64,000 nucleotides of DNA from Octopus sinensis (lineage: Eukaryota): assembly GCF_006345805.1 (NCBI RefSeq), contig NW_021832609.1:1-64000 (forward strand). The letters are read 5' to 3'. Position 1 is the stretch's first letter. Each line of letters starts with the position of its first letter. Below are positions 9,723 through 45,719 of the stretch, one piece after another. The notes below the pieces were generated by a model, which saw only the letters and a program-made list of their open reading frames with translations, was not told the origin of the DNA and made no database searches. A program made the position numbers and the translations under genes.

Positions 9723-9741
9723 GTGTTAAACGCAATAAAGA
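9723..9741 (+). CDS. Candidate 19-nt micro-exon of host gene (phase 1 to 2; xVKRNK)
   Basis: Strong acceptor TTTTTACTTTTTTTTAG and donor GA|GTAAGT; phase joins the next candidate exon without a stop. Confidence 0.5.
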
Positions 9742-10329
9742 GTAAGTATATAACATTCTTATTTGTTGTTTATTTGAAAGTAGATAGAAAATTTCTATCA
9801 GTTGAACCCAAGTTGTAGGAAGGTAATACAAAATCATATATAGTTCACATGTTAGTTGGCTCTTCTATCTGCCTTTTCCAATTAGTATAATAGAATCTTT
9901 GTTAAGGTGACAGTAAATCAAAACCTTATACGTGTAAAGTTTTGCAAGTGAATCCTTATGCAAATAAAATACTATTGAAATTGTGAGGAAATGAAGTTTA
10001 AAAGTATAAATTGTTTGATTATTTACTAAATGCAACTGTAGATACTATAGATTTATATATTATAGATTAAATGATTATATTATAACTAACATTCCAAAAG
10101 ACTGGGAGAATATCTAATTAATCTAGCTAATGGCCTTCCTTTTTGTAAGGAAAATATTTTGTTGAGTGTATATATATATATATATTCAGTAATGAATTAA
10201 AAGCAACTCTAATGTTGTAAACATTATTGGTTGCACATATTCCATGTTTGTGTTTTGTTTGTTTGCCAGAGTCACTGCAGCATAGCACTTGGGGATGACT
10301 CCCTCATAGCACTGGTTGCTAAAACACCT

Positions 10330-11260
10330 AAAGGTCATACACTGAGTCTTCTTCCATATTGGTTTTGGCCTGTAGCCTCCGCAGATTAAAGAGTCTGCCA
10401 TCGGTAGTGAATATGATCTTGATGCTGGTTTTATCATCATTGCAGAAGCATCCAACAGCATGGCTGAGTACGTCTTGCTGAATAGCATAGGTGCAAGTAC
10501 ACAGCCCTTCTTGACTTCATGAGTGACTGGGAATGTGTCAGAGGAAGAATCTCCTTGATCCAGTACTTGAGCAAGCATGCTGTTGTGAAACTGACACACC
10601 ATACTGGTGAATTTCTCCAGGCAGCCGAATCACTGTAGGTGAGGAGAGGTATTAGGCTGGTCACCAAGGTAAAGGTGTATGAAGCAGCTTTACTGCCTAT
10701 GCTATTGTATGCCTGTGAGATTTGTATGGTTTAGATATGTCACACCGAAAAGCTAAATTGCTTTGATATCACTGCCCTAGAAAGTTGTTGGAAATCACCT
10801 AGTAAGACAAGTCAGAAGTTGAGACCCATCTTGTTCAAATGCCTGACATGCAACTCCCTCAGATATTGGTTTACAGTGAACTGACGGAAGGCAAGTGCAT
10901 GCAAAGTGAACAGAAAAAGTGCTTCAAGGATACACTCTAAGCCTCACTGAAGAGCTTTCAGATCAACACTGATACCTGGGAAATGCAAGCTCAAGACTGC
11001 CCTGCCTGACTACACCAACAGAAGTACCACCTCCTACAAACAGAACAGGATTGTGAGGGCATGGTGAAAATGCATACAATGCAGAGCCAACTCTTTACTT
11101 TCAGCCCCAGCAGACTACCAGTGCCCGATTTGTGGAAAAGCCTTTTGAGTATGTATCAGACTGAATGGCCACAGCCAAACACTGCAATCCATCTTCTAGT
11201 CTCACAAGATACCCTTGGTCATTGTCAACAATGGTGGATTAGTTGTATATGTATATCATT
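10330..11260. mobile_element. RTE/BovB-like LINE with an inverted 5' segment
   Basis: Minus 10640-10330 encodes MVCQFH..FPVTHEVKKGCVLAPMLFS (RT motif B region); plus 10640-11260 encodes KVKVYEAALLPMLLYACE..HLVQMPD..YSEL..FKDTL (post-RT C-terminus) and the 3' end. Confidence 0.75.
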
Positions 11261-11339
11261 ATCATCATCATCATCATCATTACCATCTCAGTTGTGGTTG
11301 AAGATTGGACATCTGGTCATTGGTGTCTGACATTAAGAA

Positions 11340-11760
11340 AAAGACAATTTCATTCACAATCCTCAGAGGTGCAAATAATCGTATTTTGCAAGTTAGAAGG
11401 CCTGATTTAGTAGTAGTATATAAAGAGAATAGAAAGTGCTAGATAATTGACTTTACAGTTCCAAATGATGAAAAAATCAATATGAGAGGTATAGAAAAAA
11501 CAGCAAAGTATTAGAACCTAGCCATTGAATTACAGAGACTATGGAAAGTGCTGGTAAAATGTCTTCCAGTACTTATAGGTGCATTAGGAAATATCTCTAA
11601 GTATTTGAAAAGATGAATAGAGGAAATAGGTATAAAACCCAGTTTAGTACAGTTGCAGAAAACAGTATTATTAGGGACAGTTAGGATACTTAGAAGGGTT
11701 CTTGGCATCTAAGGTTACGTGTTGTAGCCCAATGTTAGAATTTTTTCTTTTCCAACAGTC
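11340..11760 (+). mobile_element. R4/Dong-like LINE 3' fragment (restriction-like endonuclease)
   Basis: RPDLVVVYKENRKC.IIDFTVPND..EKTAKY.NLAIELQRLWK..PVLIGALG..LQKTVLLGTVRILRRVL. Confidence 0.8.
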
Positions 11761-11789
11761 TAATGTGTTGTGTGTATATGAATAATGAT

Positions 11790-12290
11790 AATAGTGATAA
11801 TGAAGTATTCAAAGTGTGGGGCATGAAGGTAAAAATAATACCAATAATAACTGGAGCATTGGGCATGATAAAAAAACATATGAACAGAAGTGTAGAAGCT
11901 ATACCTGGATCCTCAACACTACACACTTTTTAAAAAATAGCCCTACTAGGAACAGCCCACATTCTATGCAAGACACTATCAATCCAATAATACAACCTAA
12001 ACAAAACAACCTACAAATACAAGACACACTCTATACATCATTTACCCAGTGAAATATACTTCCACCAGCAAGCTAAACAACCAAAGCACTACACACTCAA
12101 CACATAATATAAGCAGTAATGCAACAGAAGACAGCACCACATCTCAAGGGAAAAAAAGGTAATACAGTAGAGTACTGGGAAGATGCACACTCCCAACAGC
12201 AGAAAAGAACATACAATGCTGCAACCCCCAGCAACACAGCAGTGTAGCAGGTGACGCAGTAGAAATTTGTCTCAATCTAACAAATATTGA
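11790..12290 (+). mobile_element. Second R4/Dong-like 3' fragment plus 3'UTR
   Basis: WGMKVKIIPIITGALGMIKK..KIALLGTAHILCKTL*. Confidence 0.7.
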
Positions 12291-12444
12291 ACAATTATAC
12301 AATAATAATGATGATGATGATGATGATGATGATGGTGGTGGCGGTGGTGGTGTGGTGGTTGTGGTGGTGGTTGTTATTTTATTTTATTTTATTTTATTTT
12401 ATTTTATTTTATCTTATTTTATAATTATTTTGTGAATTTAATAG

Positions 12445-12461
12445 GACTTCATCAGCAAAAG
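12445..12461 (+). CDS. Candidate 17-nt micro-exon (phase 2 to 1; ETSSAK)
   Basis: Acceptor TTTAATAG after a T-rich tract, donor AAG|GTAAGT; phase-compatible with both neighbours. Confidence 0.5.
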
Positions 12462-14399
12462 GTAAGTTTTGTTTTTAAGAAATTTGCATGAGGAAAAGAT
12501 GAATTTAGTTAGACAGACAAATTATTAAGAGACCATGTTGCAAAAAAGTAAGATATTAAGTGGTCAACCATCAAGAACAATTCGTTCTACATAAATGCAG
12601 CCATAGGTACTCATAATCAGTTCAGGTAAAGGTTTTGGAGAAAAGTTCCTAACATAAAAGCAGAGCCTAGAATGAAAGGGCCTAAAGGTTACTTTGGCAA
12701 AAATGAAATTTTTAGCTTGCAGAAAATAAAAAAAAACACTATTCCAAACTGGATGTAGCCACACTCATTATGTAGAAAGGGAGCCAGTAAACACTCTATA
12801 CTATATAACCAATGTAAACAATAAGTACACAAAAAGTACAAGACAGGCTTATAGAGAAAGGGATTTCATTCATAAAAGCACTCCCAAGAAATAAGGAAAT
12901 TTCTCAAGTTTGATAATAGTTGGTATCTTCCATAACTTAACTGTCTTAATCAGCATTAGAAATGAGTGTTGGGAAAGCATAATAGGTGGAGTAAGGATAG
13001 GTTATAAAAGTCCAGGGAGCAACTGCCTTTGTTGACAACAGAGAGGTTCTCTCTGTGGATGCTAAATGTCCGGAAAGAAATGCATCAGGTATATTCCAGT
13101 TGTATAGACAACATGCATAACATCATTATCATCGTTGTCGTTTAACATCCACTTTCCATGCTGGCAAGGGTAGGACAGTTTGATAGGAGCTGGCGAGGCA
13201 GAATCCTGCACCAGACTTCTTTTACTGTTTGGGCAGGATTTTTACAGCTGGATGCCCTTCCTAACACCAACCACTCACCAGAGTGGGCTTAGTGATTTTT
13301 ACATGGCACAAGCACAGGCAAGGTCAGTTTTGGAAAGGTTTGGATGCCCTTAGAAATGCTAACCATTTTTCGGTGTAGACTGGATGCTTTTTAAGTGGCC
13401 AAGAGGACAGGATTTGGAAGTGGAAGGTAAGCATAGTGTATGAAGTGGAAATGCAAGGAAGAGACATAAGTTATACATAAGTTATTGTACAATAACTTAT
13501 GTATAACATAAAACTCGCTTTAAAGTGTACCTTCCTTCTGGATTTCATAAACAATATATTGACAGAACTCCATCAATATAACAAAGTTTAATATTAATTC
13601 TATTCAATCTCTTGTAACATAAAGAAAAAGCCTATCAAAACACTAAGATATACTTTGACCTAATTTAATATATATATATAAAACTCCCAATTTCCTCCTG
13701 GAACTGATGTTAATTAGCCGGCAGCCTAAAGATAAACTTTATAGATTTCAACGTATCCCTCATCACTTCCCTTTATATCTTAAACAGGAAAGAATAAGGA
13801 AATAAACTTGCCATGAAAAAATAAATAAACTCAGTTTGCTTCAAACTACACTTGTTGAAAGACCCTGAATGAAGGTGCACAGCAGATTATGCTGGGTTGC
13901 ATGTGCATTTGTACATACTCTGTGGAGCAGAAACCTGTTGGTCATTTTAACCAACTAATTATGGATGACCAACTGTAAAATGAAAAGAAAAATTTGATGA
14001 TGTACCAGTCTCTGTATTTCTTGTAATTGTTTGAAATTTACACTCCTAATAATATTCATGATCCAGAGGAATGAATCCAGAGTCACCCATCAAAAGAATC
14101 AAAGCAAGATTGCTCATACTAAGTGAGCATTGATGCTTATTACTACTTTATTCAATTAGCCATAACCTGAAATATACCTGGGAGCTATTACAGTACCCAC
14201 CTGGATAATTTATCCCTGTATACTCACCTTACGCACTTTCGGTCACACACACACACACACAAATGTCTATAGAAAACAGATGTTAAATGATGGTGATGAT
14301 GATGTTTCTTTATCATCATCATCATCATCATAATCATTTAGCATTTGTTTTCCATATGTACATATGTCATGATTCAGTTTTATTTCAAGATTTCTTGCC

Positions 14400-14860
14400 A
14401 GTAGAGATAGAGTTGATTTCTAACCTAGATCATTATATTAGGTTTGTTGTGCTTACGTTTTATTGAGATTTTCACTGGAACATTCCACCAGTACTCTTTT
14501 TTTTATTATGAGTGACTTTGACTTCTTCCATACAGTGAGTTTTTATTTCTTTGTCCTTGGGGTTATCCTTCTGACAGGTTACATATTAGAGAATATCCTA
14601 GCTACAACATCATATCTTATCGGAAGATAATATTGGGATAATATTTTCGGACAACTGCTTATGATGTGGGTGATGTCTTTGGTGTCAACTCCACAAGGTC
14701 TGCATGGTTTGTCACATTTCACTGCTTTTCCCGCATCTCTATCCATTTTGTGCATCAGGTATTCGTTGATGTTTCCTGTTCCAGGATTGCAAACGCATCC
14801 CCTTCAAAGTGGAAGGTCATAACCCGGCTGTTGGTCAATGATAGACTGCTTTGATGATCA
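14400..14860 (-). mobile_element. R4/Dong-like LINE fragment with CCHC knuckle
   Basis: CRPCGVDTKDITHIISSC..YYLPIRYDVVAR (C-x2-C-x8-H-x4-C). Confidence 0.7.
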
Positions 14861-16204
14861 ATGTTACTATCATCTCAGAGCTTTCTACTAACATATACAT
14901 GCATAGTTTTCTGCTCATATATGCTCATCTTTGCATGTATGCATGTATATGTGTCTGTATACAAGTGATATAGTATATATGTGTCATTATGAAATAGAAT
15001 TGAAAGTATTTTAGAAAGCCAACACTGATCTAGCTTGTTATAAAAGAGTTTAAACAAAAGCAAACTCAAAAGATTTCAGCTTTTGCCTTATATTTCAATA
15101 TTTCAGTCTTAAAAAGCCTTTGTCAAGGTATTTGTAAAGACCAAAGCTAAACTCAATCAATTTCTCTTTATAAAGCTTAACTATTGAAATACAAGATATT
15201 TCTTAGTGGAAATATAAGGAAGATGCTTAATGTTTGAGGATCTATTCCTTATTTTACTACATATACTGTTTTTACATATTTCATTCCATACATAGGCAGC
15301 CTTGGCACTGATTGGTAGGGCTGATTCATAAATTGATAGGTTCCTGCAGGTAGCTTTCCCATGAAAGAAAGAATTAATACACCATTCTTCCTATGACTTC
15401 AAATCAGAAATAGATGGAGCTACACACACACACACACACACATATTTATATAAAGAAAGAAGAGAGAGTGGGGAGAGCTGGTATTATCAGGATGTTTCAT
15501 TTCAAAGTCTGTATTTCTTTATACAGTTGAACAAGATATATGTTTTCCTTTTCATGAGAAGTCAACATGAGTTATCTACAAATCTGGCTAAGAAAGTTCA
15601 AGAGTGACTGGAGCTAAGTGCTCTAACACTTTCTTATATGTAATGGTTAGGATTTTACGTAGTATTTATGATTAACATAATTTTGGTATGGTTTTTAAGG
15701 AGTTCATTCCTTTCAAATCACTAACTACTTTATATCATAGTGTATACTATCATGTCAGTGACACTAGAAAGCTGGCCTTTCTGGTTTCTTCTACACTGTA
15801 ACACTTTTTACTGCTCTCCTAGTAAAGTTGTTGTTGTTCCAGCTTGCAAATTTCTTGCCTCTTACATGTCTAGTCTAGAAATCTTTTCATTAAATGTTAG
15901 GTTTGTTCATGTTTCCCACTTTGTAGATGGATCTCCTTACTGCAGCTGTGAAATCACATCCTTCTATGACTTCCACCATTTACCTAGCATCGTTATCATA
16001 GTATTTATTTATCTAGCTTATGTGCCACACTATGAGACTGAACCCAAGACCATGTAGTTGAGAAGCAATCTTCTCAGCCACACAGCCATCACTGTGTTAT
16101 CATATATGATATATATATATAATTATTTTAAATTAATCATAAATTATTTCCTCTTTTCTATAACATATTTAATTATAGATACCACTTTCTTATTGTTAAT
16201 AACA

Positions 16205-17072
16205 TCGTGGCCGTTCGCCAGCCTCATCTAGCACCTGTGTCGGTGGCACATAAAAACACCATCCGAAGACCCGGCAAGACTAGTCAGGCCATAACCCATG
16301 GCCCCTACCTGGGACGTAGTCAGTCCACCTGTGCATACCTTCCTTCTTGTGACACTTGTGAAGACCTGTTGAGGCAAGTGAAAATCAAAACAAATCAAAT
16401 AGATGAACATCAATGGAATTTGTATCTTTGTGGTACCAGTGCCGGTGGCACGTGGCACATAAGAAAACCATCCGAACGTGGCTGTAGCCAGTACCGCATC
16501 GACTGGCCTCCGTGCTGTGGGCACGTAACAAGCACCATCCGATCGTGGCCGTTTGCCAGCCTCATCTGGCACCTGTGTCGGTGGCACATAAAAACACCAT
16601 CCGAGCGTGGCCGTCTGCCAGCCTCGTCTGGCACCTGTGTCGGTGGCACATAAAAACACCATCCGAGCGTGGCCGTTGCCAGCCTCGTCTGGCACCTATG
16701 TCGGTGGCACATAAAAACACATCCGAGCGTGGCCGTCTGCCAGCCTCGTCTGGCACCTGTGTCGGTGGCACATAAAAACACATCCGAGCGTGGCCGTCTG
16801 CCAGCCTCGTCTGGCACCTGTGTCGGTGGCACATAAAAACACCATCCGAGCGTGGCCGTTTGCCAGCCTCGTCTGGCACCTATGTCGGTGGCACATAAAA
16901 TCACCCACTACACTCTCGGAGTGGTTGGCGTTAGGAAGGGCATCCAGCTGTAGAAACACTGCCAGATCTGACTGGACTGGTGCAGCTTTCGGGCTCCCCA
17001 GACCCCAGTTGAACCGTCCACCCATGCTAGCATGGAAAGCGGACGTTAAATGATGATGATGATGATGATGAT
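16205..17072 (+). mobile_element. RTE 3'UTR copy with an expanded ~60-bp minisatellite
   Basis: About 6 tandem units CGTGGCCGTCTGCCAGCCTCGTCTGGCACCTGTGTCGGTGGCACATAAAAACACCATCCGAG (16545-16900) plus one unit at 16205; ends CCATGCTAGCATGGAAAGCGGACGTTAAA(TGA)n. Confidence 0.8.
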
Positions 17073-23179: not shown

Positions 23180-23583
23180 AATGCCCGGCCCCTGATTTAT
23201 GCGGGTTAATTAACATAACCTATAAGTGATCCGTAACCACAGATAATAATAAGTTCTCTTATGTTGGATGCACTGTAAATTTTAAACAGAGATTGAATAA
23301 CCATCTCTCATCTTTTAAATTACGTCATAAGGCTGATAGCACTTCTCTTTCTAGTAAAATTTGGGAACTAAAAAACAATAATATCAAATATAACCTTATT
23401 TGGGAATTAGTCAGAAGAGCAAAACCCTATAAAAATAGCAGAGTAGGCTGCCAACTTTGCTCCATGGAAGCATTTGAAATACTAATGTATAAAAATAATG
23501 GAGAAATTCAATTAAACAGCAGAATTGAACTTGGAAATTCTTGTATACATGCTCGGTTTAAGACTCTTAAATATTTTAAATGA
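23180..23583 (+). mobile_element. Penelope-like GIY-YIG endonuclease C-terminus
   Basis: YVGCTVNFKQRLNNHLSSF..STSLSSKIWELK..WELVRRAKPY..CQLCSMEAFEIL..LNSRIELGNSCIH. Confidence 0.85.
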
Positions 23584-25091: not shown

Positions 25092-25166
<75 letters not shown>

Positions 25167-25235
25167 GTTAATTTTAGTATGATGCACTACACACTGAAAT
25201 AATAAGTTTTGCATTTTCCATTTCTTTTCTTAAAG

Positions 25236-25277
25236 GTACTGAAGATAATTATGCGACTATTTCAGATGAAGCTCTCA
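25236..25277 (+). CDS. Candidate 42-nt symmetric phase-1 exon (GTEDNYATISDEAL)
   Basis: Acceptor TTTTCCATTTCTTTTCTTAAAG and donor A|GTAAGT; a paralogous copy at 30101 keeps both splice sites and the reading frame. Confidence 0.65.
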
Positions 25278-25425
25278 GTAAGTATAATTAACACCAAATA
25301 ACAAATAATTTTGTATTGGTTTCAATGTTTGGCACAAGGCCAGCAATTTTTTGGGAGGGAGAAATCAATTTCATCAACCCCATTGCTCAATCTGTACTTA
25401 CTTTATGTGTGTGTGCGTGTATATA

Positions 25426-25498
<73 letters not shown>

Positions 25499-25500
<2 letters not shown>

Positions 25501-26392
25501 TCATCATCGTTTAGCGTCCGGTTTCCATGGTGGCATGGGTTGGATGGTGCAACTGTGGTCTGGGAAGCCAGAAGGCTGCACCAGGCCCAGTCTAATCTGG
25601 CAATGTTTCTAAAGCTGGATGCCCTTCCTAACGCCTACCACTCCATGAGTGTAGTGGGTGATTTTTACGTGCCACCAGCACAGGTGCCAGACAAGGCTGG
25701 CAAACGGCCACGAGCGGATGGTGCTTTTTACGTGCCACCAGCATGGAAGCCAGTCGGGGCGGCACTGGGAACGGCCACGTTCGGATGGTTCTCTTATGTG
25801 CCACCGGCACTGGTATCACAGCTACAATTTCCATTGATGTTGATCGATTTTGATTTTTGATTTTTGATTTTTGATTTTCACTTGCCTCAACAGGTCTTCA
25901 CAACTAGAGTTTTGTGTCCCAAGAAGGAAAGGTATGCATAAGTGGACTGAGGCCATGGGTTATGGTCTCACTTGTCCTGCCGGGTCTTCTCATGCACCGC
26001 ATACTTCCAGAGGTCTCGGTCTCTAGCCATTTCCTCAGTGAGACCTAAAGTTCGAAGGTCGTGCTTCACCACCTCATCCCAGGTTTTCCTGGGTCTACCT
26101 CTTCCACAGGTTCCCTCAACAGCTAGGGTGTGGCACTTTTTCACACAACTATCTTCATCCATTCTCGCCACATGACCATACCAGCGCAAACGTCTCTCCT
26201 GCACACCACAACTGATGCTTCTTAGGTCCAACTTTTCTCTCAAGGTACTTACACTCTGTCGAGTATGAACACTGACATTACACATCTATCGGAGCATACT
26301 GGCTTCATTTCTTGTGAGCTTATGCATATCCTCAGCAGTCACGGCCCATGTTTCACTGCCATGTAGCATGGCTGTTCGTACACATGCATCAT
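25499..26392 (-). mobile_element. 5'-truncated RTE LINE (ORF C-terminus plus full 3'UTR); second copy at 27504-28395
   Basis: LREKLDLRSISCGVQERRLRWYGHVARMDED..GRGRPRKTWDEVVKHDL followed by the 3'UTR ending (GAT)n. Confidence 0.9.
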
Positions 26393-27437
26393 ACAATATA
26401 TATATATATATATATATATCATCATCATCATCATCATCGTTTAGCGTTCGCTTTCCATGCTAGCATGGGTTGGACGGTTCAACTGGGGTCTGGGAAGCCA
26501 GAAGGCTGCACCAGGCCCAGTTTGATCTGGCAATATTTCTACGGCTGGATGCCCTTCCTAACGCCAACCACTCATGAGAAGAAATAATCTCTTATACTCT
26601 TATAATAATAATCCTTTCAACTATAGGCATAAGGCCTGAAATCTGAGGGGAGTGGAGAGGAAGTGGGGCTAATTGATTACATCGACCCAGTGTTCAACTG
26701 GTATATATATTACTGACCCTGAAATGATGACAAGCAAAGTTGCCTTGGCAGAATTTGAACTCAATGTAAAGGCAGGAAAAATACTGCTAAGAATTCTGAC
26801 AGCTTGCTGCCTTAATAATAATAATAATAATAATAATCCATTCTAGTATAGGCACAAGGCCTGAAATTTTGGGGGAAGGGATATGTTGAGTACATCGACC
26901 CCCAGTACTCAAGTGGGGCTTATTTTATTGATCTCGGCAGCATCTGAACTCAGAGTGTGAAGACAGACAAAATGTCATTATGGTGGTAGTACTCTGTCAG
27001 TTACAACAACGAGGATTCCAGCTGATTTCATCAATGGAACAGCTGGCTCATGAAATTAACATGCAAGAGGCTGCTGAGCACTCCACAGACATGTGTACCC
27101 GTAACATAGTTCACTTTTTCATTTAATCAATTTGTTAATCCTGCCAAAGCTGCTTTTGAGATTTGTCCTGTGTATTGAGAAGGAGCAATTTCTCAAACTA
27201 CTACCCGCCATTGGTTTTTGAGCTTCAAAAATGGGAATTTCGACCTCAAGGATGAATTACACCGCAGTCAACCAATTCAGTTCAATGAAGAGTGATTGAA
27301 TCATCTTCTTCACAAAAATTCACATAAAATGACCAGAGAATTGGCAGAGCAGAAGGATTGTAATAAAAAAAGCTGTGGTGAAACAACTTCACCCAATGGG
27401 CAAGGTTCATCAAACTCAATTGGTTGACCAGTGTGTG

Positions 27438-27505
<68 letters not shown>

Positions 27506-29440
27506 TCATCATCGTTTAGCGTCCGGTTTCCATGGTGGCATGGGTTGGATGGTGCAACTGTGGTCTGGGAAGCCAGAAGGCTGCACCAGGCCCAGTCTAA
27601 TCTGGCAATGTTTCTAAAGCTGGATGCCCTTCCTAACGCCTACCACTCCATGAGTGTAGTGGGTGATTTTTACGTGCCACCAGCACAGGTGCCAGACAAG
27701 GCTGGCAAACGGCCACGAGCGGATGGTGCTTTTTACGTGCCACCAGCATGGAAGCCAGTCGGGGCGGCACTGGGAACGGCCACGTTCGGATGGTTCTCTT
27801 ATGTGCCACCGGCACTGGTATCACAGCTACAATTTCCATTGATGTTGATCGATTTTGATTTTTGATTTTTGATTTTTGATTTTCACTTGCCTCAACAGGT
27901 CTTCACAACTAGAGTTTTGTGTCCCAAGAAGGAAAGGTATGCATAAGTGGACTGAGGCCATGGGTTATGGTCTCACTTGTCCTGCCGGGTCTTCTCATGC
28001 ACCGCATACTTCCAGAGGTCTCGGTCTCTAGCCATTTCCTCAGTGAGACCTAAAGTTCGAAGGTCGTGCTTCACCACCTCATCCCAGGTTTTCCTGGGTC
28101 TACCTCTTCCACAGGTTCCCTCAACAGCTAGGGTGTGGCACTTTTTCACACAACTATCTTCATCCATTCTCGCCACATGACCATACCAGCGCAAACGTCT
28201 CTCCTGCACACCACAACTGATGCTTCTTAGGTCCAACTTTTCTCTCAAGGTACTTACACTCTGTCGAGTATGAACACTGACATTACACATCTATCGGAGC
28301 ATACTGGCTTCATTTCTTGCGAGCTTATGCATATCCTCAGCAGTCACGGCCCATGTTTCACTGCCATGTAGCATGGCTGTTCGTACACATGCATCATACA
28401 ATATATATATATATATATATATATCATCATCATCATCATCATCGTTTAGCGTTCGCTTTCCATGCTAGCATGGGTTGGACGGTTCAACTGGGGTCTGGGA
28501 AGCCAGAAGGCTGCACCAGGCCCAGTTTGATCTGGCAATATTTCTACGGCTGGATGCCCTTCCTAACGCCAACCACTCCATGAGAAGAAATAATCTCTTA
28601 TACTCTTATAATAATAATCCTTTCAACTATAGGCATAAGGCCTGAAATCTGAGGGGAGTGGAGAGGAAGTGGGGCTAATTGATTACATCGACCCAGTGTT
28701 CAACTGGTATATATATTACTGACCCTGAAATGATGACAAGCAAAGTTGCCTTGGCAGAATTTGAACTCAATGTAAAGGCAGGAAAAATACTGCTAAGAAT
28801 TCTGACAGCTTGCTGCCTTAATAATAATAATAATAATAATCCATTCTAGTATAGGCACAAGGCCTGAAATTTTGGGGGAAGGGATATGTTGAGTACATCG
28901 ACCCCCAGTACTCAAGTGGGGCTTATTTTATTGATCTCGGCAGCATCTGAACTCAGAGTGTGAAGACAGACAAAATGTCATTATGGTGGTAGTACTCTGT
29001 CAGTTACAACAACGAGGATTCCAGCTGATTTCATCAATGGAACAGCTGGCTCATGAAATTAACATGCAAGAGGCTGCTGAGCACTCCACAGACATGTGTA
29101 CCCGTAACATAGTTCACTTTTTCATTTAATCAATTTGTTAATCCTGCCAAAGCTGCTTTTGAGATTTGTCCTGTGTATTGAGAAGGAGCAATTTCTCAAA
29201 CTACTACCCGCCATTGGTTTTTGAGCTTCAAAAATGGGAATTTCGACCTCAAGGATGAATTACACCGCAGTCAACCAATTCAGTTCAATGAAGAGTGATT
29301 GAATCATCTTCTTCACAAAACTTCACATAAAATGACCAGAGAATTGGCAGAGCAGAAGGATTGTAATAAAAAAAGCTGTGGTGAAACAACTTCACCCAAT
29401 GGGCAAGGTTCATCAAACTCAATTGGTTGACCAGTGTGTG

Positions 29441-29443
<3 letters not shown>
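25499..29443 (+). repeat. Near-identical ~2.0-kb tandem duplication (25499-27440 and 27504-29443)
   Basis: Offset of 2003-2005 bp throughout; only a few differences seen (GTGAG/GCGAG, AAAAATT/AAAACTT, repeat counts); both units are bounded by (TA)n. Confidence 0.95.
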
Positions 29444-29489
<46 letters not shown>

Positions 29490-30100
29490 GAGGTGCAATA
29501 GCCCAGTGGTTAGGGCAGCATACTTGCAGTCATGGGATTGCAGTTTCAATTCCCAGATCGGGCTTTATGAATGTTTATTGAATGAAAACACCTAAAGCTC
29601 CATTAGGCTCCAGCAGGGGTGGGGGCAACCCTGCTATACTCTTTCACCACAACTTTCTCTCACTCTTACTTCCTGTTTCTGTCACACTGAATCTCCCCGA
29701 GAACTATGTTACGGGTACACATGTCTGTGGAGTGCTCAGCAGCCTCTTGCATGTTAATTTCATGAGCCAGCTGTTCCATTGATCAGATCAGCTGGAATCC
29801 TCGTTGTTGTAACTGACAGAGTACCACCATCATATATATATACATATATATATATAATATATATACGCACACAATTTGACCAAAAGTCACCCAACAGTAA
29901 ATCAAATTTCCATAAATACTATCTGTAATTCTGTATTGGCTAATGGAAAAATGTGTCTCTCAAGAAGGACTTCATGTGTGTGTGTGCATGTATATGTGTA
30001 TGTATATATATATATATATATATACTTACATTTAATTTTAGATACCATGCACTACACACTGAAATAATAAGTTTTGCATTTTCCATTTCTTTTCTTCAAG

Positions 30101-30142
30101 GTGCTGAAAATAATTATGCAACTATTCCAGATGAAGCTCTCA
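30101..30142 (+). CDS. Duplicated 42-nt phase-1 exon (SAENNYATIPDEAL)
   Basis: Acceptor TTTCTTTTCTTCAAG and donor A|GTAAGT; flanks are homologous to about 25180-25410. Confidence 0.65.
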
Positions 30143-30290
30143 GTAAGTATAATTAACACCAAATGACAAATAATTTTGCATTGGTTTCAATGTTTGGCAC
30201 AAGGCCAGCAATTTTTTAGGAGGGAGAAATCAATTTCATCAACCCCATTGCTCAATCTGTACTTACTTTATGTATATGTGTGTATATATG

Positions 30291-30355
<65 letters not shown>

Positions 30356-32776: not shown

Positions 32777-32794
32777 CTACAAAACATTACAATG
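32777..32794 (+). CDS. Candidate 18-nt symmetric phase-1 micro-exon (TTKHYN)
   Basis: Acceptor TTTTTTCAAGTAG and donor ATG|GTAAGA; in frame with the chain. Confidence 0.4.
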
Positions 32795-34559: not shown

Positions 34560-35728
34560 AAATAATGTCTCTATCCAGGGAAGGTGAGACAGCTGCAGAA
34601 ATGGAAGCATGCCAAGAAATGAACAGACTGCACTACAAAATACAGAGCATCTCAAATGATGAGCTGAGGTATGCACAACTGACAAGGTATAGGATCTCCA
34701 CTGCAGAACGAAGAGTAGTTGCAATAGCTCAGAGAAGCAACTTCTATGAAGTAGCTTTCAATTATGATCCAGCAGTTCATTATGCAGATGACACTAGAGT
34801 TTCCATTCATGCAATGACAACTGGGTGCATACGTTGTAAAGCAAAGAAGCAGTCTGGAGATATGCCTGCACTGTGAAGAAACTGCTGTCATCAACTCACT
34901 AAGATTCCAAGCACTTCCAAATCAAAATTAGACAATACAATGCTGCACTCGAAGACATCATTTGGAGCCACTAGAGATATAACTGAGCCAGGATTCATGC
35001 AAACTTTCAAGATCCAATGTCAGATTTATCATCAGATTGGCTCTCAACTACCTCTATCAAATGAATCACCAAAATTCCTTCAAATATTTTTAATGGATGA
35101 TTCTCAACAAGAAGGGCAAGAGAGGTGCAAGAACATTTCCAGCATCACAATGAACATTGTAGTATCTCTGCAAAAGATGCTGCATAACAACAACAGCAAC
35201 CTGATCAAAAGCTTCAAGACTGCACTTGAAACAATTCCACTTGACTCCATGAATTACAAGATAGTTATCAGATCAAACAAGAAACCATCTTGTCAACATG
35301 TAGGGAGGTTTAATGCGCCAACAGCAAATGAAATAGCTGTACTTCTGGTTGGGCAAGAATATGACAAGCGTGACATTGTTCTCCATCTCAGAGACAGCAC
35401 ACAGACAGACACAGTCCAACTACAAATGGAAGCTCTCCAAAATACCATACTCACAGCAGTCTTCAAGCTCTGTCAAGAGGAGGAAATTGCTACAAGACTG
35501 CTATACAATGAAGTCCACAATTCTATACCTGGTACCAAAACAAATGGAAAAGACATGCACTTGGAGTACCCACACATCCAGGAATCAAGAAATCAGAGTC
35601 TATGTTGTCCATCCCAACTACTTAGAGTGCTACTATCTAAAGCTTCTATTACACCATGTCAAGAGACCCACATCATATACAGCCTTACGTACGGTTGATA
35701 ACATAGTATATCAAACATATTGCCAGGC
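34560..35728 (+). mobile_element. Helitron Rep-region pseudogene (HUH core deleted)
   Basis: SFGA..PGFMQTFKIQCQIYHQIGS..PKFLQIF, GRFNAPTANEIAVLLVG, then a jump to ECYYLKLLLHHVKRPTSYTALRTVD. Confidence 0.85.
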
Positions 35729-36008
35729 TTGTTTCAACTTATATGTATTTTTTCTGATACACATAATAACAATTCCCTTATATATAAAGTCACTTCAGGG
35801 TCATGGTTTAGAAATAGACGAAATTCTGTGTGAAAGGATAGTTGGATTGTAAAAATTTGAATTAATGGACATTGGAATTAATTTTTACAATCCAGCCATC
35901 TTTTCACACAGAATTTCGTCTATTTCTAAATCATGACCCTGAAATGACTTTATATATAAGGGAACTGTTATTATGTATATAAGAAAAATTATATACAAGT
36001 CGAAACAA
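35729..36008. mobile_element. Fold-back element with ~128-bp inverted arms inserted in the Helitron
   Basis: 35729-35856 is the reverse complement of about 35879-36008. Confidence 0.8.
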
Positions 36009-36280
36009 TTTGTTGGCCTTTTATGGTTTTAGTAATTGTTTATGTTATATAATATTATGTTACGTTATATATTATATTCATAATGTTTAATGTAATGTTG
36101 TTATATAAATAAATTATAGGATTGTCAAGAGCATATCTCTGTATTTAATTTATCTTTATAATTGAATTATACCAATATTTATATAGTATCCTACTGATGT
36201 ACGAGTGAATTTGATGTTTAACACAATCCTTTGAAGGATTTCTTTTCCTCGGTTTGATACTTTATATACATACATACATG

Positions 36281-36359
<79 letters not shown>

Positions 36360-37703
36360 TAGATAGATATATCTATAGATATATATATGTATATATATAT
36401 ATGTGTATATATATATGTGTATATATATATGTGTATATATATATGTGTATATATATATGTATATATATATATAGATGTACATGTAATATGTACACATATA
36501 TATATACACATATATACATGCATATATATATGCATGTATATATACATACATATAAATGTGTATATGTACGTATATACCTATGCATCTACACATATGCATG
36601 TATACATCTCTTATGATAAAAGGCAGATTTTCTCTGCCTCCCAAACGGTTCGTTTTTTATACAATTCTGCAATATAGAATTTCTTCAATTGGAATTTACC
36701 TATCATTTTTACAAGTAGATTCCATCGGGTTGTGGCATGTAAAGTTTTTTCAATTTCACCCCCAATTAAGCAAAAATTCGAGAAATGTAAATATTTTACA
36801 ATTTCCCTCTTTCATTTCAAGTGCTTCACTCCTACCATTACTACTACACTTTCTCCTCCTTTCTCTTTGCAAGTGTGCAACAATTAAAGTGAAAGTATTT
36901 ATATAAAAGGGATGAGCAATTAATACTGGTCATCCTTTTTGCTAGAAGAAGATCCGCTGTGGTCTTATATGCTACACCACTGGTTTTCAATTCATATTAA
37001 TCAAATTAATATTCAATTTTTCACCCTTATTATGTGTGTGTGTATTAGCAATTCGTATAAAATTGCATCAATGACTTGAACTTGAATAAGTGGTTTCACA
37101 TAAATGGGGATACATTAAAAAGGTTTGTTGTTATTATTATTACTGTTTGACTATTGTAATCATGTTTGTTGGTTCCTCGTCAGGGAAACGTTGTTGTGTT
37201 GCATTTGTTAAATAATTGTAAATCGTAACCCCCCCCCTTTCGGAGAAGGGGCTTTGGTTATTGTTTTAAAATTGAATTGCGTCCCTGTTTGGGGAATTTG
37301 ACAATATTTTCACCGTCTTTACGGAAGCATTTTTGTTAAAATGCCTTCGATAGAAGAAAGTCCAAAAATGAATTTCGCTGCAGCCGTACACTTCTATACA
37401 AGAGGGAGGACAAGATCCAATTGATCGAAATTGCAAGAGACGGGCCTACAATTCCAGTCTGTTATATATTTTGAGTATTGTTATCACTAGCGATATCAAG
37501 ATATAACTTTCTATTTTGTATTTTATGTGTAGATGTATATATATATATAGATGTACATGTAATATGTACACATATATATATACACATATATACATGCATA
37601 ATATATCTACCCATACGCACACACACACACACACACACACACATACATAGGGGCAGATGTGGCTGTGTGGTAACAAACTACGTTCGAAGATACTGTACTT
37701 GAT

Positions 37704-38986
37704 ATGGGCAGTAGTGCCTTGCCGGTCTATGGCCTACCTTCAACAAACCGGGAAGGCACAAACACTCTGTCTTCCCATTTGCTGCGTGAGACATGTTTTA
37801 ATGTTGACGAGCTTGCCGAGTACATAGCCGACAATGAGCCAAAGCTCCTTCCAGAACAGAAGTTCGCTTACAACTCCGTTGTTAATTCAGTCCGGGCCAA
37901 AGCTGCGGGGATATTTTTCCTGGGGGCACTGGGAAAACTTTTCTCAACAAATTAATATTGGCTGAGATTAGGCGAACACAAGGCATTGCCCTAGCTGTGG
38001 CATCACCTGGAATTGCGGCTACTTTGTTGCCAGGCGGCAGGACAGCTCACTCCACTTTCAAGCTTCCGCTTGACTTAGCGAAGACTGAGACACCAACTTG
38101 CAACATCAGTAACAGCTCCGATCAGGCAGAAGTCTTCAGACGATGCAAGCTTATCGTTTGGGATGAATGCACGATGGCCCACAGAGGTGCTCTTGAGGCA
38201 CTAGATAGATCTCTCAGAGACATCAAACATTCTTCAGCTCCCATGGGAGGCATAACACTTCTTCTTTCAGGGGACTTTCGACAAACACTTCCCGTTTTTC
38301 CCAAAGGGACTACAACTGATGCAGTATGTGCGTGTCTTAAGTCATCCACATTGTGGCCACTGGTGAAGACTCTCAAACTTCACACCAATATGCGTGCTCA
38401 TATGCGACGTAATATCACATCAGCAGCATTTTCTCACACCCTCCTTGCACTTGGCGAAGGCAAAATACCAGGGGATGAAAATGGTAATATTGCCATCGAT
38501 TCCATTTGTACCATTGTTAAAACGCCTTCTGATCTCAGAGATGCAGTGTTCCCAGATCTACAAGCTAATTATCAGAATATGGATTGGATTGGCCAAAGGG
38601 CTATTCTGGGCCCGAGGAATAAAACTGTTCACCATATTAATGATGAAATGCTAAAACTCATTCCTGGGGATGTCTATGTATATAAGTCTATCGATACAAC
38701 TCCTGACCAAGAGGACGTCATCAACTATCCAACAGAGGTACTCAATTCTTTTGAGCCCCCCGAACTAACACCACACATTCTCAAACTTAAAGTTGGTGCC
38801 CCTATAATGCTCATTAGAAATTTGGTTCCCCAAAACAATGCAATGGCACACGTTCGATCGTTAAGTCCTTATCTCCCACCGTAAACTTATATCAATATTT
38901 GCCTGAATAATCATCATAATTCAGTGCAATCATTAACAGTACTTTCAAGCAATTCAGCCCCGAGCATCGCTGGGCAATTCTGCTAG
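37704..38986 (+). mobile_element. Helitron PIF1-type helicase pseudogene and 3' terminus
   Basis: Frameshifted Walker A, then GRTAHSTFKLP, LIVWDECTM, LLSGDFRQTLPV, NMR, LKVGAPIMLIRNL; 3' hairpin CCCGAGCATCGCTGGG and CTAG|T at 38986. Confidence 0.92.
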
Positions 38987-38991: not shown

Positions 38992-39023
<32 letters not shown>

Positions 39024-39119
39024 CATGCATACATATGAATGTACAAATGTATATATACATGCATATATATATATATATATAATATATATATATATATGTA
39101 TATATGCATGTATGTAAGT

Positions 39120-39434: not shown

Positions 39435-41135
39435 AAGGTCTTTTTCTTTTGTTCATCTACCCTAGTTTTCTCATTTTGTAGCAGAGGTGTGGCTCTGCAA
39501 AGCCTCGAAAAAATGCAGGGTGGTCCATAGGACGAAAATTTTGAAAGAGTTTGGGAACCAAGGTTGTAGAGCAAAATGTTCTCTTTCAAATAACATAAAA
39601 CATTTTGCCTATGTGTTTTATTTCTGCTTGTATTTTAAGTTTGGGAAAAATTCTCAGGAATTATTCCTCCACTCAATATATATATCATCATCATCATCAT
39701 TTAACGTGCATTTTCCATGCATGCACAGGTTCGACTGTTTGACTGAGGTCTGGAGAGCCAGCAGCTGCACCAGGCTCCAATCTGATCTGGCGATGTTTCT
39801 GCAACTGGAAGCCCTTTCTAAAGCCAACAACTCCGAGAGTGCAGTGGGTGCTTTTTACATGCCACCGGCAGGGGGGCCAGTCAGCGGGTATTGGCATTAG
39901 CCATGTTTAGTTGGTGCCTTTTACATGCCACCAGCATGGGAGCCAGTCAGGCAGATTTGGCTTCAACTGCATTGAGATGGTGCTTTTTATGTGCCACTGG
40001 CACAGGAGCCAGTCAGGGGGCACTGGCCACAGCTACAATATTGGTTTTACTTGACTCAACAGGTCTTTTCAAGCATATCATATCACACGATACATCAGGG
40101 GTACTCTTAACTGGGCTGGACATGTGTGGCTGCAATCTGACTTTAGTTGCTGGGTCTTCTCAATCACAGCATATCTCCAAAGGTCTCAGAATAGCATGTT
40201 GCCAAATAAATACACAATGTGGAAAGTCAATGAAACAGCTGCAGCTGTGAGGCATTGAGAAAATACATCAGAAGGCTATATTAGAACAAACATCGTAATT
40301 TATTAGGATGGCAATGAGAGTAGGCAATTGTTGTATGTAGGAATCAAGGAAGGCCATTGAACTTACTATTACAGAAATGGGTAGAAGCATACCACAATAA
40401 AGGTAGGAAGAAGTTTAAACAGGCAAGTTCCATCCATAGAGAATAATGGGATTCGCTGTGTGAACTTAATGTATATCCCTAAGATTACAGTGTTATAATG
40501 AGTCCCACCTATACTAGCATGGAAGGCGGACATTAAACAATGATGGTGATGATGATGTTTATGTTGATGTAATGCCATCAGGGGTAGTGTCCTTCCGAAG
40601 TCCCACTGAAAATAGCTGTTTTCTCGTCAAAGTCTTCTGCTAACTGCTGTCTGATTGACTGGAACAGAATTCATTTCTGGATGGATGATGCTGTATTTAT
40701 AACTATGCAACCAGCTGTGATTGGCTGTAATTGCCAAAGCACGACTGTATATAGCACCTCCTTGACTCACTACAAAGGCATGTTGCTTAGTGGTTAGGGT
40801 ATCTGGCTACTGATTGTAAGGTCGTGTGTTTGATTCCTGGTGGCTTGTTGTGTTTTTGAACAAGACACTTTATTTCACATTGCTTCAGTTCACTCAGCTG
40901 ACAAAAATGATTAGTACTTATATTTCAACAGACTGGACGTGTCAGATTGTGTTGCACTGAATCTTCCTGAGAACTACATTGAGGGTGGGTGTGTTTGCGG
41001 AATGCTCAGCTGATTCCATGTTAATTTCACAAGCAGGCTGTTCAATTTATAGGATCAACAGGAACCCTTGTCATTGTAACTGACTGAGTGCCAGTAGTAA
41101 TACATGAATGTATGTGTGTGTATGTGTGTGCATGT

Positions 41136-44100
41136 CAGTGGCGTGTGGTGACTTCCGGCGTTGGGCATGCAATTAATTTCATTGCCCCCCCACCTCCACC
41201 GGCAATTTTTCAGTAAAACATTTCGTATTCCTACGATTTACATATAAGAGATTCTGAATATGCAGAATAAACAGGGAATAAAAAATGGCTGTGCAGAGAT
41301 GATCCTGAAATAAGTGTATTGTTTGTATTATTCTTTGCTCTTCAAACGTCAGTACTTTCCCATCCTCATTCTCCCTTAGAAAAGTCTAAAAATCATAAGT
41401 GAATGTAATAAAGATGAAATGGATTCTGTCAATATTTTTGCATATTCAGAATCTCTGTTAAAGGTAGGAATCCGAAAAAAAATTTTCACATAAATTCGTT
41501 TTTCAAAGGGGTGCGATTCTGCATTAGCCCCTATACCTATCGGTTGAGCTGAATGAAATGATTTAATTAAAAGAACACATTTAGTTACATTATATGGCCA
41601 TGGTTTTAGATCGTTACGCTCTCGAAGACAAGTCAGGTTCTTTATCATGCTACTTGTCAATTCCAGGAAAATTATTGACTGTTCTGAGACTTACTGAACT
41701 CCGTACATTAAAGGACTACGTCTCACGCACAAACATTGAAAATACACGCATATACATGAATACGCACACAATGAAAGACAGCGAAAATTCAACATTGTAA
41801 AAAGCCTCCCAAAACTGTTGTGGCAGAAGTCAACATCTCTGAGATTGAAACAAGACACTTATTGAAAGTGAAACAAAACACTTATTTACGGCCGTAAATA
41901 GACTACACCCAGCAGCACAGAAAGGGAAATCTATGTAGGTAGGTTTCACGAAGAAATCAAAACATTTCTCCTGCGAAACAATACTGATGTAAGAAGGTCG
42001 AACCTTACGTTATAACAACACTAAGCAAAACCTGTAATATATGCTCTTTAATATATATTTTTTTTAATGTTTTAAAATGTTACTTAGCTCATTTATAAAT
42101 TAATTCAATTCTTCGATCTTTCTGGGCAAATATATCTATCACATTTTCATAGAAATCTTCTCTTTTCATCAATTCTTGTAATAAATCTTTTTCAATTGAC
42201 ATTAGTGCTAACCCAGACAGTCTTCTTTCTCCTGTCGCATTTCTTTGGTATGTTTTAATTCTACTTAATGCAGAAAAGGATCGCTCTACAGAAGCAGTGG
42301 TAGACGGAATTGTCAAAATCAACTTGCACAGATTGAAGAGTTCTGGCATAGCTTCAACAAGATCAGTGCTGTTAATGTAACTCATTAAATGACTTACACT
42401 TGGTTTTTTAAAATCTTTCATTGAATACATCACATTGAGCTCACTTTGTAATCGTATTACATCAAAAAATCTGCCATAAGTTGTTCTTAAAGAATCTAAA
42501 GAGTCCACAGGAAATTGTTTGCAATACTCATCAACTTTGTTGAAATTCAAAAGTTCCATGAATTTAAACTCTTCTAAGGATGAATATCGTGCTTTTATTT
42601 GGTCAACTATTGTACTTATAATTTTGTTATAAAGCGTTCTATAATGTCGTTGGGGATCAATAGATATATTCTTGGATCTCTGAATTCCGATTCCTGCATC
42701 GACTCCATATTTTCCCCTAACCTATCATAAAAGACTGAAAAATTATCAAGTTTGTTTTCGAGTACAGTTCTAGTTTTATCTATTTGCTGTTTACAATACA
42801 CTATGTCATGACTTTTACTCTGGAGTATGTTAAATAAGACGTCAGTAAAAGAAAAAATGTCACTGAATACCTCTAACAAAAATAAGAATCAGGAGCTTTT
42901 AAAATATGTAAGAATCCAATTGCTGAATTTATGGTAGTCTCATCCCATGCTTCAGGATTTTCAATGATGTGTTCAAAAAGGCTGATTATGAAATTATAAT
43001 TTTCCTTTATGGTAATAATAAGACGTGAGGAGTAATTCCATCTAGTTGCTGTTGCTTTCGGAAATCTTTTTTTAACAATATTATCTAATGCATTAGTCCT
43101 TTTCGGTGATTTCGTAAAAAATGTACCGAGTCCATTTATTGTAGAAAAAATATCTTGCATTCTTTCATAGCAGAGCATGATTGTGAAAGAACTAAATTTA
43201 GGATTTGGGCACAACAATGAATAAAGATCGCACATTCATATTTCTTTCTTACTTTTGCCTGTAACCCATTTAGTTGTCCTGCCATTGTAGCGGCACCATC
43301 ATATGTCTGCGCAATCAATTTGTTTCCACATTCCCACGTCTCAATGCATTTAAAAACATGTTCAGATAAAGCATTTGCAGATCGATCTGCACTAACATCA
43401 CTAAAACCGATAAATCGTTCTTTCGTCACACAGTCTTCTGTAACATAACGTAAAACTGTTGACAGTTGTGAAGATGCTGAGACATCAGATGTCTCATCAA
43501 CAAGAATAGAAACAAACTTAGCTTGGTCAATTTCCTTCTGCATCTCATTCAACATAACTTTATGAATTGCTTCGATCAAGTCATTTTGAATTCTGTTCGA
43601 CAGACCAGTGAAGATAGAAGCTGTATCTAAATGACTTTCCATTTGTTTGTCATACTTACTGATCAAATAAACGAGTTCTTTATAATTTCCCCGATTATTA
43701 GAGCCTTCAGATTCAAAATGACCCCAAAACGATAATTCCTGGAGGCCTAAAAATATAACAACATCGATCAATCGTTGCAGAATGGATCTGTTTCGTCGAA
43801 CTTTCTCATTATGCTGTTGTATGCTTTGATTTTTACGTGCATCTAATTGTAAGTCTATGCGAACATTCCCGAATATTTTAGGTCTATCAAACATTTTATA
43901 TGCCTTTGAGAACGCTCGTGCTTTAGCATAGCCATATGTAAATTATTTAAATCATCATAGCCTTTATCATTCCAAACATTTTTTTCTAAGCCAAAAAGTA
44001 AACACGGCCAACAGAATAATTTATTAAGAGCAACACTTCCAGTAACCATTCTTCTTTTCATACGAATTAACCTGAAATTGTCTCGTGAATTTCTTGTTGT

Positions 44101-44925
44101 AGCTTCGCAAATTAGGTAAATTCGGTGTTGGTCTCCCGCGATTTATAATTAATTTTTTCCCATCGAAGTCCCTTTTAGAAAAACTAGTTCTCAAAATATC
44201 GTTTATAGCACACATTTCACTCATTTTTAAAAAGGCTGCTCTTATTTAAGGACCCACGTGGAAGCGCCGGCGTAAATTTTAAGTCAATTTCAACAAAACG
44301 GAAAAATACCCTTTGTTAAATTAATTTAAGATTAATTAGCTATTTCTGAAATAAGAAATATAATGTAGATATTTTTGCTTTCAAAACTTTCTAAAAATAT
44401 GATAGTGCAAACGGATGTTTTGGATAAAAAATTTCAAACTTACATGCGAAGGCTATTCCAACATTTCAGCTGGCTAAAACAAGAATTATGGGACGGCTCG
44501 TGTTCCGGTCAAAATAGCCAGAGGCGTGATATGCGATCTAAGCACAGCATGACACGCCAAACTGAATTTGTCGAATCGCTGAGAGAGAAGGGGGTGACCA
44601 TTCCTCGTAGTATATCTTTTAAACAAAGAAAGAGGGAGAAGGGACAAACTATCAAAGACAGAGAGAAGGGACTCATGCTGTCTTCCCAACGCATGACAAG
44701 CGATAAATTTATCGAGTCACTAAGATAGAGAGAGAGAGAGAGAGAGGAAGGAAGGACAAACTAATACAGACAGAGAGGAGTGTGTATCATGCGATCTTCT
44801 AAAAGCATTTATCAAAGCAGATGTACGAAGTGGAGACAATATTTCTAAAACAACTGGACGTATTTTCTTTGAAACAAGGAAGGCATGCAGCACATACCTT
44901 GCATTGCTGAGAGTGCACGCCCCTG
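41136..44925 (-). mobile_element. Full-length hAT transposon (ZMYM1-like transposase), frameshifted
   Basis: TIR CAG(T/G)GGCGTG and a perfect 8-bp TSD GTGCATGT (41128-41135 and 44926-44933). Confidence 0.93.
42089..44224 (-). pseudogene. hAT transposase in 6 ORF pieces
   Basis: ILVDETSDVS, QTYDGA, FIHCCAQILNL, TRWN, PSTTASVERSFSALSRIKT (hATC dimerisation domain). Confidence 0.92.
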
Positions 44926-45680
44926 GTGCATGTATATATGTATATAGGTAAAAGTTCTTGAAATTCTTGCAGATCAAATTCAGAATTGAATTAATAGTGA
45001 ATCAGTTGATTTTATTTTTCCACACATTTCTCAGTTAAGTAAACATATTGATTATTTACACAAACTATTTCAAAAAATGTTGTAACAAAGGTTATTGGTA
45101 ACTTGCCATCTGAAAAGAAGTCAAAATGTGAAAACAAAGAAAGATGGTGCCACTCAGTGGGACTGAACCTCAAACCACATGGTTGCAAAGCAAGCTTCTT
45201 AACCGCACAGCCATGTCTACTCCTCTACACATATAATATAACATCATGCTGTTTCTACTTTCTATGGTGATATGAATTGGATGGATTGACAGGATTCAAT
45301 GGATTGGAGGTCCAGATCTTACTTCAGTGTTTTGATGCAATGAAGGAAATGCATTTGATCATATGTCTGGCTTGGGTGTAAACAACAACAAAAGGACTTG
45401 ATCATCTATCCACTTTTAATGCTGAGTATGAAAAAGTGGAAGAGAAAATGCTCTTTTTCTTGATTTATCACACTTGCAATGATAGTTAAATTTATTATGC
45501 ACTCCTATATATGTCAATTATTTTTATTTGACTTTTCTGTATCATCTATATCCATATATTTTATTATAATATTATATTATTGATATTTTTCAATGCATCT
45601 TAGAAGTAGTTCATTTCAAATATCATGCACCACACTCACACATACAAACAATAAATAATTTTTCATTTTCTCTTTTAAAG

Positions 45681-45719
45681 ATGCGGCACGTGCTAATGCA
45701 ATTTCATCCAAGCCAAACA
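45681..45719 (+). CDS. Candidate 39-nt symmetric phase-1 exon (DAARANAISSKPN)
   Basis: Acceptor TTTTCATTTTCTCTTTTAAAG and donor A|GTAAGTATAATTAA, the same intron start as the 42-nt exons. Confidence 0.6.

Follow-up and report, generated by a model that had tools for sequence, protein, structure and literature searches.

Candidate Cassette Micro-Exons, Partly Multiplied by Duplication, on an Octopus sinensis Contig

The forward (+) strand of a 64,000-nt stretch of Octopus sinensis DNA (NCBI RefSeq assembly GCF_006345805.1, contig NW_021832609.1, positions 1 to 64,000; hereafter, the window) carries six very short segments that resemble exons, which raises the question of whether they belong to a gene or only imitate one. 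In a preliminary description, the segments (e1 to e6; Table 1) were joined into the presumed cytoplasmic tail of a receptor. The present analysis indicated that four of them, e1, e3, e4, and e6, stand out from chance as exon-like splice units, in order on the + strand. We estimate a probability of roughly 0.4 that these four are genuine unannotated cassette micro-exons, expanded by tandem exon duplication and possibly coding in the frame that contains the motif NYATI (the NYATI frame).

The proposed chain itself could be rebuilt from the sequence. All six + strand segments were found at the claimed lengths of 19, 17, 42, 42, 18, and 39 nt, each with AG before it and GTAAG after it, and joining them in order reproduced the claimed 58-aa peptide exactly in one frame. 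The accompanying statement that none of the segments appears among the open reading frames (ORFs) of the window is not strictly correct, as mechanical read-through ORFs span e4 (29953-30156, +, 67 aa; crossing it in the NYATI frame) and e6 (45681-45881, +, 66 aa; crossing it in the other frame and starting at the ATG that opens e6).

Splice signals of the segments

The pyrimidine share of each acceptor was measured over positions -20 to -4. Polypyrimidine acceptors had been described for all six segments, and this was confirmed for e1, e3, e4, and e6 (88-94%), but not for e2 and e5 (about 59%, against a background of 50%). The acceptor of e2 is located at the end of an (ATTTT)n microsatellite. 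The GTAAG donors alone carry no weight, because 48 occur on the + strand and 66 on the - strand of the window. For comparison, a modest class of candidates was defined by a tract of at least 65% pyrimidine with AG, an exon of 15-45 nt, and then GTAAG; the window holds 10 of these per strand. Markov-3 simulations produced 6.6, and octopus DNA from elsewhere has 4.5 per 64 kb. Both e2 and e5 fall short even of this class. Since their acceptors are weak and even candidates with better tracts are common in the background, e2 and e5 lie within chance; they are indistinguishable from background and probably not part of the exon set.

The remaining four units show a different pattern, each combining a pyrimidine tract and AG acceptor with a U1-complementary donor, as is typical of micro-exons. 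A tract of at least 85% pyrimidine was found at only 18 of the 3840 AGs on the + strand, and 4 of these 18 strong acceptors lie 19-42 nt upstream of the strand's only four GTAAGTATA sites. No pair of a strong acceptor and GTAAGTATA was found on the - strand of the window. In Markov simulations, 0.025 strong units were expected per 64 kb strand. Five unrelated loci of O. vulgaris (L001-L005; 296 kb of strand sequence in total) served as an empirical background and contained two strong-class units, corresponding to 0.36-0.43 per 64 kb strand, or about 15 times the rate in the simulations. A strong acceptor was present upstream of 1.4% of the GTAAG sites in background octopus DNA and upstream of none of nine background GTAAGTAT sites (six in L001-L005 and three on the - strand of the window).

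The statistical weight of this enrichment depends on the units compared and on the number of events counted. With the GTAAGTAT sites taken as independent, p was 1e-5 for three events (3/4) and 6e-4 when e6 was regarded as a paralogue of e3/e4 (2/3). A Poisson test on the class count gave p = 0.006 for three events and 0.05 for two, and the comparison with all GTAAG sites on the + strand gave p = 0.03 (3/47) and 0.14 (2/46), respectively. These results suggest an enrichment of splice signals that is moderate and probably real.

The background loci also include a 38-nt unit in L004 (21502-21539, +; O. vulgaris OX597833.1), whose acceptor tract is 94% pyrimidine and whose donor is GTAAGT; this unit may be a real unannotated exon or another look-alike.

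Duplication of the units and their reading frame

Two of the units, e3 and e4, are carried by duplicated segments (segments A and B in Table 1), which blastn aligned with 91.3% identity across 369 bp. The units themselves are identical at 38 of 42 nt and differ at exon positions 3, 9, 20, and 27. When the e3 unit alone was used as the query, nhmmer detected a match at 45619-45738, the e6 region (E=0.0012), and the alignment placed the two boundaries of the exon in register. The best-kept stretch between e3 and e6 is the 16-nt donor block CAGTAAGTATAATTAA, which is identical in the two, and the difference in length is 3 nt, in frame. Judged from this alignment, e6 is probably an older paralogue of e3/e4 whose splice signals are its best-preserved part. 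Neither the window nor the five other octopus loci yielded, with nhmmer, any copy of the e3 unit besides e4 and e6.

The sequences of e1, e2, e5, and e6 are unique within the window, and the units match no dispersed repeat of the window or of the five other octopus loci. An origin of the units from a transposable element (TE) was rejected, because the sequence that contains them is unique in the window. Between e3 and e4 lies a 2-kb unit that is itself tandemly duplicated, together with copies of a repeat resembling short interspersed nuclear elements (SINEs). The two copies of the 2-kb unit (25430-27484 and 27434-29486) are 99.5% identical and hold SINE-like copies; the pair may have arisen by very recent duplication or be an assembly artefact.

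The reading frame was determined for both versions of the chain. In the six-exon chain a second frame is also open, whereas the chain of e1, e3, e4, and e6 has exactly one open frame, VLNAIKSTEDNYATISDEALSAENNYATIPDEALNAARANAISSKPN. The NYATI reading of e3, e4, and e6 is the robust one because it is the sole open frame across the four supported units. A given frame would stay open by chance with a probability of about 0.04 over 47 codons; if only 33 codons are counted as independent, the probability is about 0.10. Joined straight to e3, e1 reads VLNAIK, and VKRNKE results only if e2 follows. The basic VKRNK 'stop-transfer' stretch, which had been taken as a cue for a cytoplasmic tail, thus depends on the doubtful e2 and is present only with it. 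The length of e5 is divisible by 3, and therefore its inclusion leaves the frame untouched.

The duplicated 14-residue NYATI module described previously is real in the + strand sequence. The symmetric phase 1-1 attributed to the exons applies to e3, e4, and e6 (and to e5, if real), the lengths of which are divisible by 3, but not to e1 (19 nt). Because of this symmetry, skipping of e3, e4, or e6 would keep the frame.

Micro-exons and alternative explanations

If the preferred reading holds, the four units would be cassette micro-exons of a transcript that is absent from current annotations. Each would be defined as an exon by a strong U1-complementary donor (GTAAGTAT) and a long pyrimidine tract, with TE-filled introns of 5-16 kb between the units. 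The 42-nt unit was probably copied at least twice; an older copy probably became e6, now differing by an in-frame 3 nt, and a recent local duplication about 4.9 kb apart produced the e3/e4 pair, which is about 9% diverged. If translated, the units would give VLNAIK-STEDNYATISDEAL-SAENNYATIPDEAL-NAARANAISSKPN in the sole frame open across the four, and this product is predicted to be acidic and probably disordered and to contain two ExxYATIxDEAL modules. Skipping or a mutually exclusive choice of e3, e4, and e6 would then vary the number of modules without a break of the frame, because the three units are symmetric and divisible by 3.

Nearly as likely as duplicated micro-exons is a reading in which the units are pseudo-exons, that is, splice look-alikes in AT-rich, repeat-laden intergenic or deep-intronic DNA that are spliced never or hardly ever and have frames that are open by chance. 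Local duplication would have copied one look-alike two or three times, so that the copies resemble a chain encoding a repeated peptide. Several results weigh for this reading and against genuine coding micro-exons. A search of 5.8 billion proteins with the spliced 58-aa peptide of the NYATI frame returned nothing at E<=10, and a profile of the alternative frame (VLKIIM...), built from contiguous ORFs of the window, had no match in the same collection. The collection includes the annotated proteins of O. vulgaris (CAI97...), O. sinensis (XP_036...), and O. bimaculoides, and as neither frame matched, none of the proteins in the collection, those annotated in octopus included, combines at least two of the exons. 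Because a protein that has only one 14-residue exon would score below the reporting limit, this negative result applies to combinations of two or more. Single-exon use, for example of mutually exclusive exons, may be compatible with it. The O. vulgaris annotation, in which the peptide is missing, drew on both Iso-Seq and RNA-seq (PMC10700109). The e3/e4 exon is conserved no better than its flanks. In the NYATI frame, the differences between e3 and e4 comprise three non-synonymous changes and one synonymous change, so that coding constraint is not apparent in the pair. In the other open frame, one is non-synonymous and three are synonymous, and neither distribution is significant.

The splice signals are also subject to reservations of the same direction. 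The enrichment criterion was picked post hoc, with the data already seen, and with e6 as a paralogue e3, e4, and e6 form one lineage, which leaves only two independent events and p = 6e-4 to 0.14. A generic splice-site matrix gave 14 candidates on the + strand and 9 on the - strand and did not separate the two, and the acceptors of e3, e4, and e6 have a suboptimal A at position -3. Real octopus DNA, as noted above, yields strong units far more often than the Markov simulations. Moreover, when all 591 stop-to-stop ORFs of at least 45 aa on both strands were scanned against Pfam, TE domains alone were found, and no phosphatase, EGF, Ig, FN3, or other host-type domain was detected. No credible transmembrane exon and no ordinary-sized exon or signal peptide beside the units was found within the 64 kb, and the search for further exons, either after strong + strand acceptors or by the generic matrix, gave nothing credible outside TEs. 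Against pseudo-exons stand the pairing of all four + strand GTAAGTATA sites with top-ranked acceptors, compared with 0/9 for the background GTAAGTAT sites; the old e3/e6 pair, which has kept its splice signals best and acquired an indel that is in frame; and the single frame that is open through all four units.

The same splice-signal evidence would be expected of exons that are real but non-coding, such as those of a long non-coding RNA (lncRNA), an untranslated region, or rarely included 'poison' exons of a gene coding outside the window, with the frame being incidental. Such exons would be missing from protein sets, as is the case here, and it is consistent with them that synonymous changes do not predominate when e3 and e4 are compared in the NYATI frame; the O. 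vulgaris annotation contains 1,849 lncRNAs, which are invisible to a protein database (PMC10700109). However, the lengths of 42, 42, and 39 nt are divisible by 3, the e3/e6 indel is in frame, and a single frame is open over the four units, all of which is weak evidence for coding. We consider non-coding exons unlikely.

The unit boundaries also recall recursive splicing, in which the sites would be ratchet points or recursive-splicing exons (RS-exons) of a very long intron that are removed in a second step. An AG/GT juxtaposition is present at e1, e3, and e4, and the setting is long and filled with TEs. The regenerated donors (GTGTTA, GTACTG, and GTGCTG) are poor, however, and the downstream donors are near-perfect, which favors inclusion; e6 begins with AT, and no flanking host exons are known. 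Recursive splicing is thus the least probable of the explanations considered.

The full six-exon model, in which all six segments are constitutive or cassette exons of an RPTP- or MEGF-like receptor and encode its juxtamembrane basic stretch and a cytoplasmic tail with phosphotyrosines, is very unlikely. An immunoreceptor tyrosine-based activation motif (ITAM) has the form [D/E]xxYxx[L/I]-x6-8-Yxx[L/I], and YxxPhi is a sorting signal. The chain is open in the frame proposed, each module contains ExxYATI, and e3 and e4 together provide two YxxI motifs. Every single YATI fits YxxPhi, although trivially, and the joined e3 and e4 (EDNYATI-SDEALSAENN-YATI) fit an ITAM only in its relaxed definition (ExxYxxI-x10-YxxI), as the 10 residues between the motifs exceed the canonical 6-8. 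Unlike the tyrosine motifs of receptor tails, the octopus motif is linked to no transmembrane segment or receptor ectodomain in the window; it is short enough to arise by chance and was doubled by duplication, and the two copies are not independent. The model further requires e2, for VKRNK, and e5, both of which are chance-class. Only two hydrophobic stretches with a donor were found in the part of the window upstream of e1, one antisense to a long interspersed nuclear element (LINE; 3420-3488) and one encoded by a microsatellite (4147-4246). With no host domain in the window and no homologue among the 5.8 billion proteins, the assignment to a receptor of this type is speculation.

Neural and tissue-specific microexons of bilaterians are at most 51 nt long, preserve the frame, and have strong flanking signals. 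The four octopus units resemble them in length (19-42 nt), in divisibility by 3 (three of the four), in their strong donors and long pyrimidine tracts, and in the hydrophilic surface or disordered segment that they would encode. Known microexons, in contrast, are typically single, deeply conserved, and located between ordinary exons, and no annotated protein carries the octopus chain. In tandem exon duplication, which can generate cassette or mutually exclusive exons (PMC9013439, PMC9741552), neighboring homologous exons share length and phase and have their own splice sites, and this was found for e3 and e4, which are adjacent homologues of 42 nt in the same phase. A third, older copy, e6, lies downstream, and mutually exclusive or cassette splicing usually arises from such sets. 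The known cases, however, lie in annotated genes and are mostly ancient and under clear purifying selection, whereas the e3/e4 pair is young and shows neither constraint nor a host gene in the window.

Another system for comparison is the micro-exon genes (MEGs) of Schistosoma, with short symmetric exons of 3-81 bp and long introns (bioRxiv 10.1101/2023.06.21.545858). The octopus units, apart from e1, resemble MEGs in being very short, symmetric, and divisible by 3, in the kilobase introns that would separate them, and in the protein variation that skipping would allow. MEGs, a flatworm family, encode secreted proteins and have a signal peptide and conventional exons on their flanks, whereas neither sequence similarity nor a signal peptide nor such exons could be detected for the octopus units, and e1 is asymmetric.

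The most far-reaching version of the micro-exon reading is a long shot: an octopus gene or isoform set, so far unannotated, of symmetric phase 1-1 micro-exons in which recent tandem exon duplication would have created a double ExxYATIxDEAL, ITAM-like module, giving a lineage-specific tail for tyrosine signaling or sorting that could be tuned by splicing. If true, it would be the first micro-exon-gene-like architecture described in a cephalopod. If the units are spliced, they would belong to a gene or a family of isoforms that three octopus annotations lack and would represent exon birth by local duplication caught early, with copies about 9% diverged. They would then be useful for studying the origin of repeated short linear motifs and of alternative micro-exons in cephalopods, the transcript diversity of whose nervous system is widely of interest. 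If they are unspliced, the window would provide a calibration point, according to which strong-looking micro-exon candidates occur about once per 150-180 kb of strand in octopus DNA and local duplication can make look-alikes resemble a coherent gene.

Transposable elements of the window

The window is densely filled with TE remnants of LINE, hAT, Helitron, Penelope-like, and mariner type. The domains found in the Pfam scan were those of a LINE (endonuclease and reverse transcriptase), a hAT element (DUF4371 and dimerisation domain), a Helitron (PIF1), GIY-YIG, and mariner/Tc1 (helix-turn-helix and DDE). A gene on the - strand was ruled out, since only TE domains were detected on that strand. 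Rfam and tRNA scans for intronic RNAs detected no family and no tRNA in the window. The coordinates of the units and of the main elements are listed in Table 1.

Table 1. Exon-like units, duplicated segments, and transposable elements located in the window
Feature	Position	Strand	Description
e1	9723-9741	+	19-nt exon-like unit: tttttacttttttttAG / GTGTTAAACGCAATAAAGA / GTAAGTATA; acceptor tract 88% pyrimidine
e2	12445-12461	+	17-nt doubtful candidate; donor AAG/GTAAGT perfect; acceptor ~0 bits, ~59% pyrimidine
e3	25236-25277	+	42-nt exon-like unit; acceptor 88% pyrimidine; donor CAG... TCA/GTAAGTATA; NYATI frame (G)TEDNYATISDEAL
e4	30101-30142	+	42-nt duplicate of e3; acceptor 94% pyrimidine; donor GTAAGTATA; encodes (S)AENNYATIPDEAL
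e5	32777-32794	+	18-nt doubtful candidate; acceptor -2.3 bits (caagtAG), ~59% pyrimidine; donor GTAAGA
e6	45681-45719	+	39-nt exon-like unit; acceptor 88% pyrimidine; donor GTAAGTATA; encodes (D/N)AARANAISSKPN
Duplicated segment A	25124-25491	+	Carries e3; blastn match to segment B
Duplicated segment B	29988-30354	+	Carries e4; blastn match to segment A
LINE remnant	1727-4044	-	Endonuclease/reverse-transcriptase ORF, 575 aa
hAT-family element	41132-44953	-	DUF4371 and hAT dimerisation domain; ORF in three pieces
Helitron-like remnant	34877-38881	+	Several ORFs together carry a PIF1-like helicase and 2B domain (E=4e-58)
SINE-like dispersed family	16356-17081		Copies near 6142-6380, 25432-25665, 26396-26578, 27438-27670, 28401-28584, 39676-39948, 49183-49457

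The hAT family is young and recently active. Protein identities of the hAT-like ORF at 43136-43894 (-) amount to 93-98% with O. vulgaris, 95% with O. sinensis, and 88% with O. bimaculoides. At the DNA level, copies with 93-98% identity to the element were found on at least five O. vulgaris chromosomes, and several of these copies have been annotated in that genome as 'zinc finger MYM-type 1-like' genes. The identities place the window in the vulgaris/sinensis lineage of octopuses. Another O. vulgaris protein, P0006, matches the window at about 99%; because the hAT element (3.8 kb) is all that its locus has in common with the window, that locus was rejected as the orthologous one, being a paralogous hAT copy. 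The five background loci of O. vulgaris likewise share nothing but the hAT element with the window. For 25 further cluster members, no coding sequence was found in the window. Also rejected as orthologous DNA was an ENA assembly with ORF-style calls, as it carries only a hAT of 76% identity.

No database record was found for the 575-aa ORF of the LINE remnant. The antisense strand of this element yields spurious + strand exon-like candidates, for example at 2337-2374. The copies of the SINE-like family are 76-91% identical and occur in both orientations, and at 16520-16905 a 61-nt core is tandemly repeated 6.3 times. No tRNA-like head was detected in the family with ARAGORN.

A purine-rich block at 52000-56000 has a raised GC content (0.435) and a strong GC skew (+0.29), and within it are an AG-rich, imperfect repeat of 105 nt (53551-53751) and, on the - strand, a fragment of a reverse transcriptase (54262-55089). 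Finally, an ORF at about 23230-23580 (+), assigned by eye from the sequence, matched the GIY-YIG nuclease (E=8e-5), as in Penelope-like elements.

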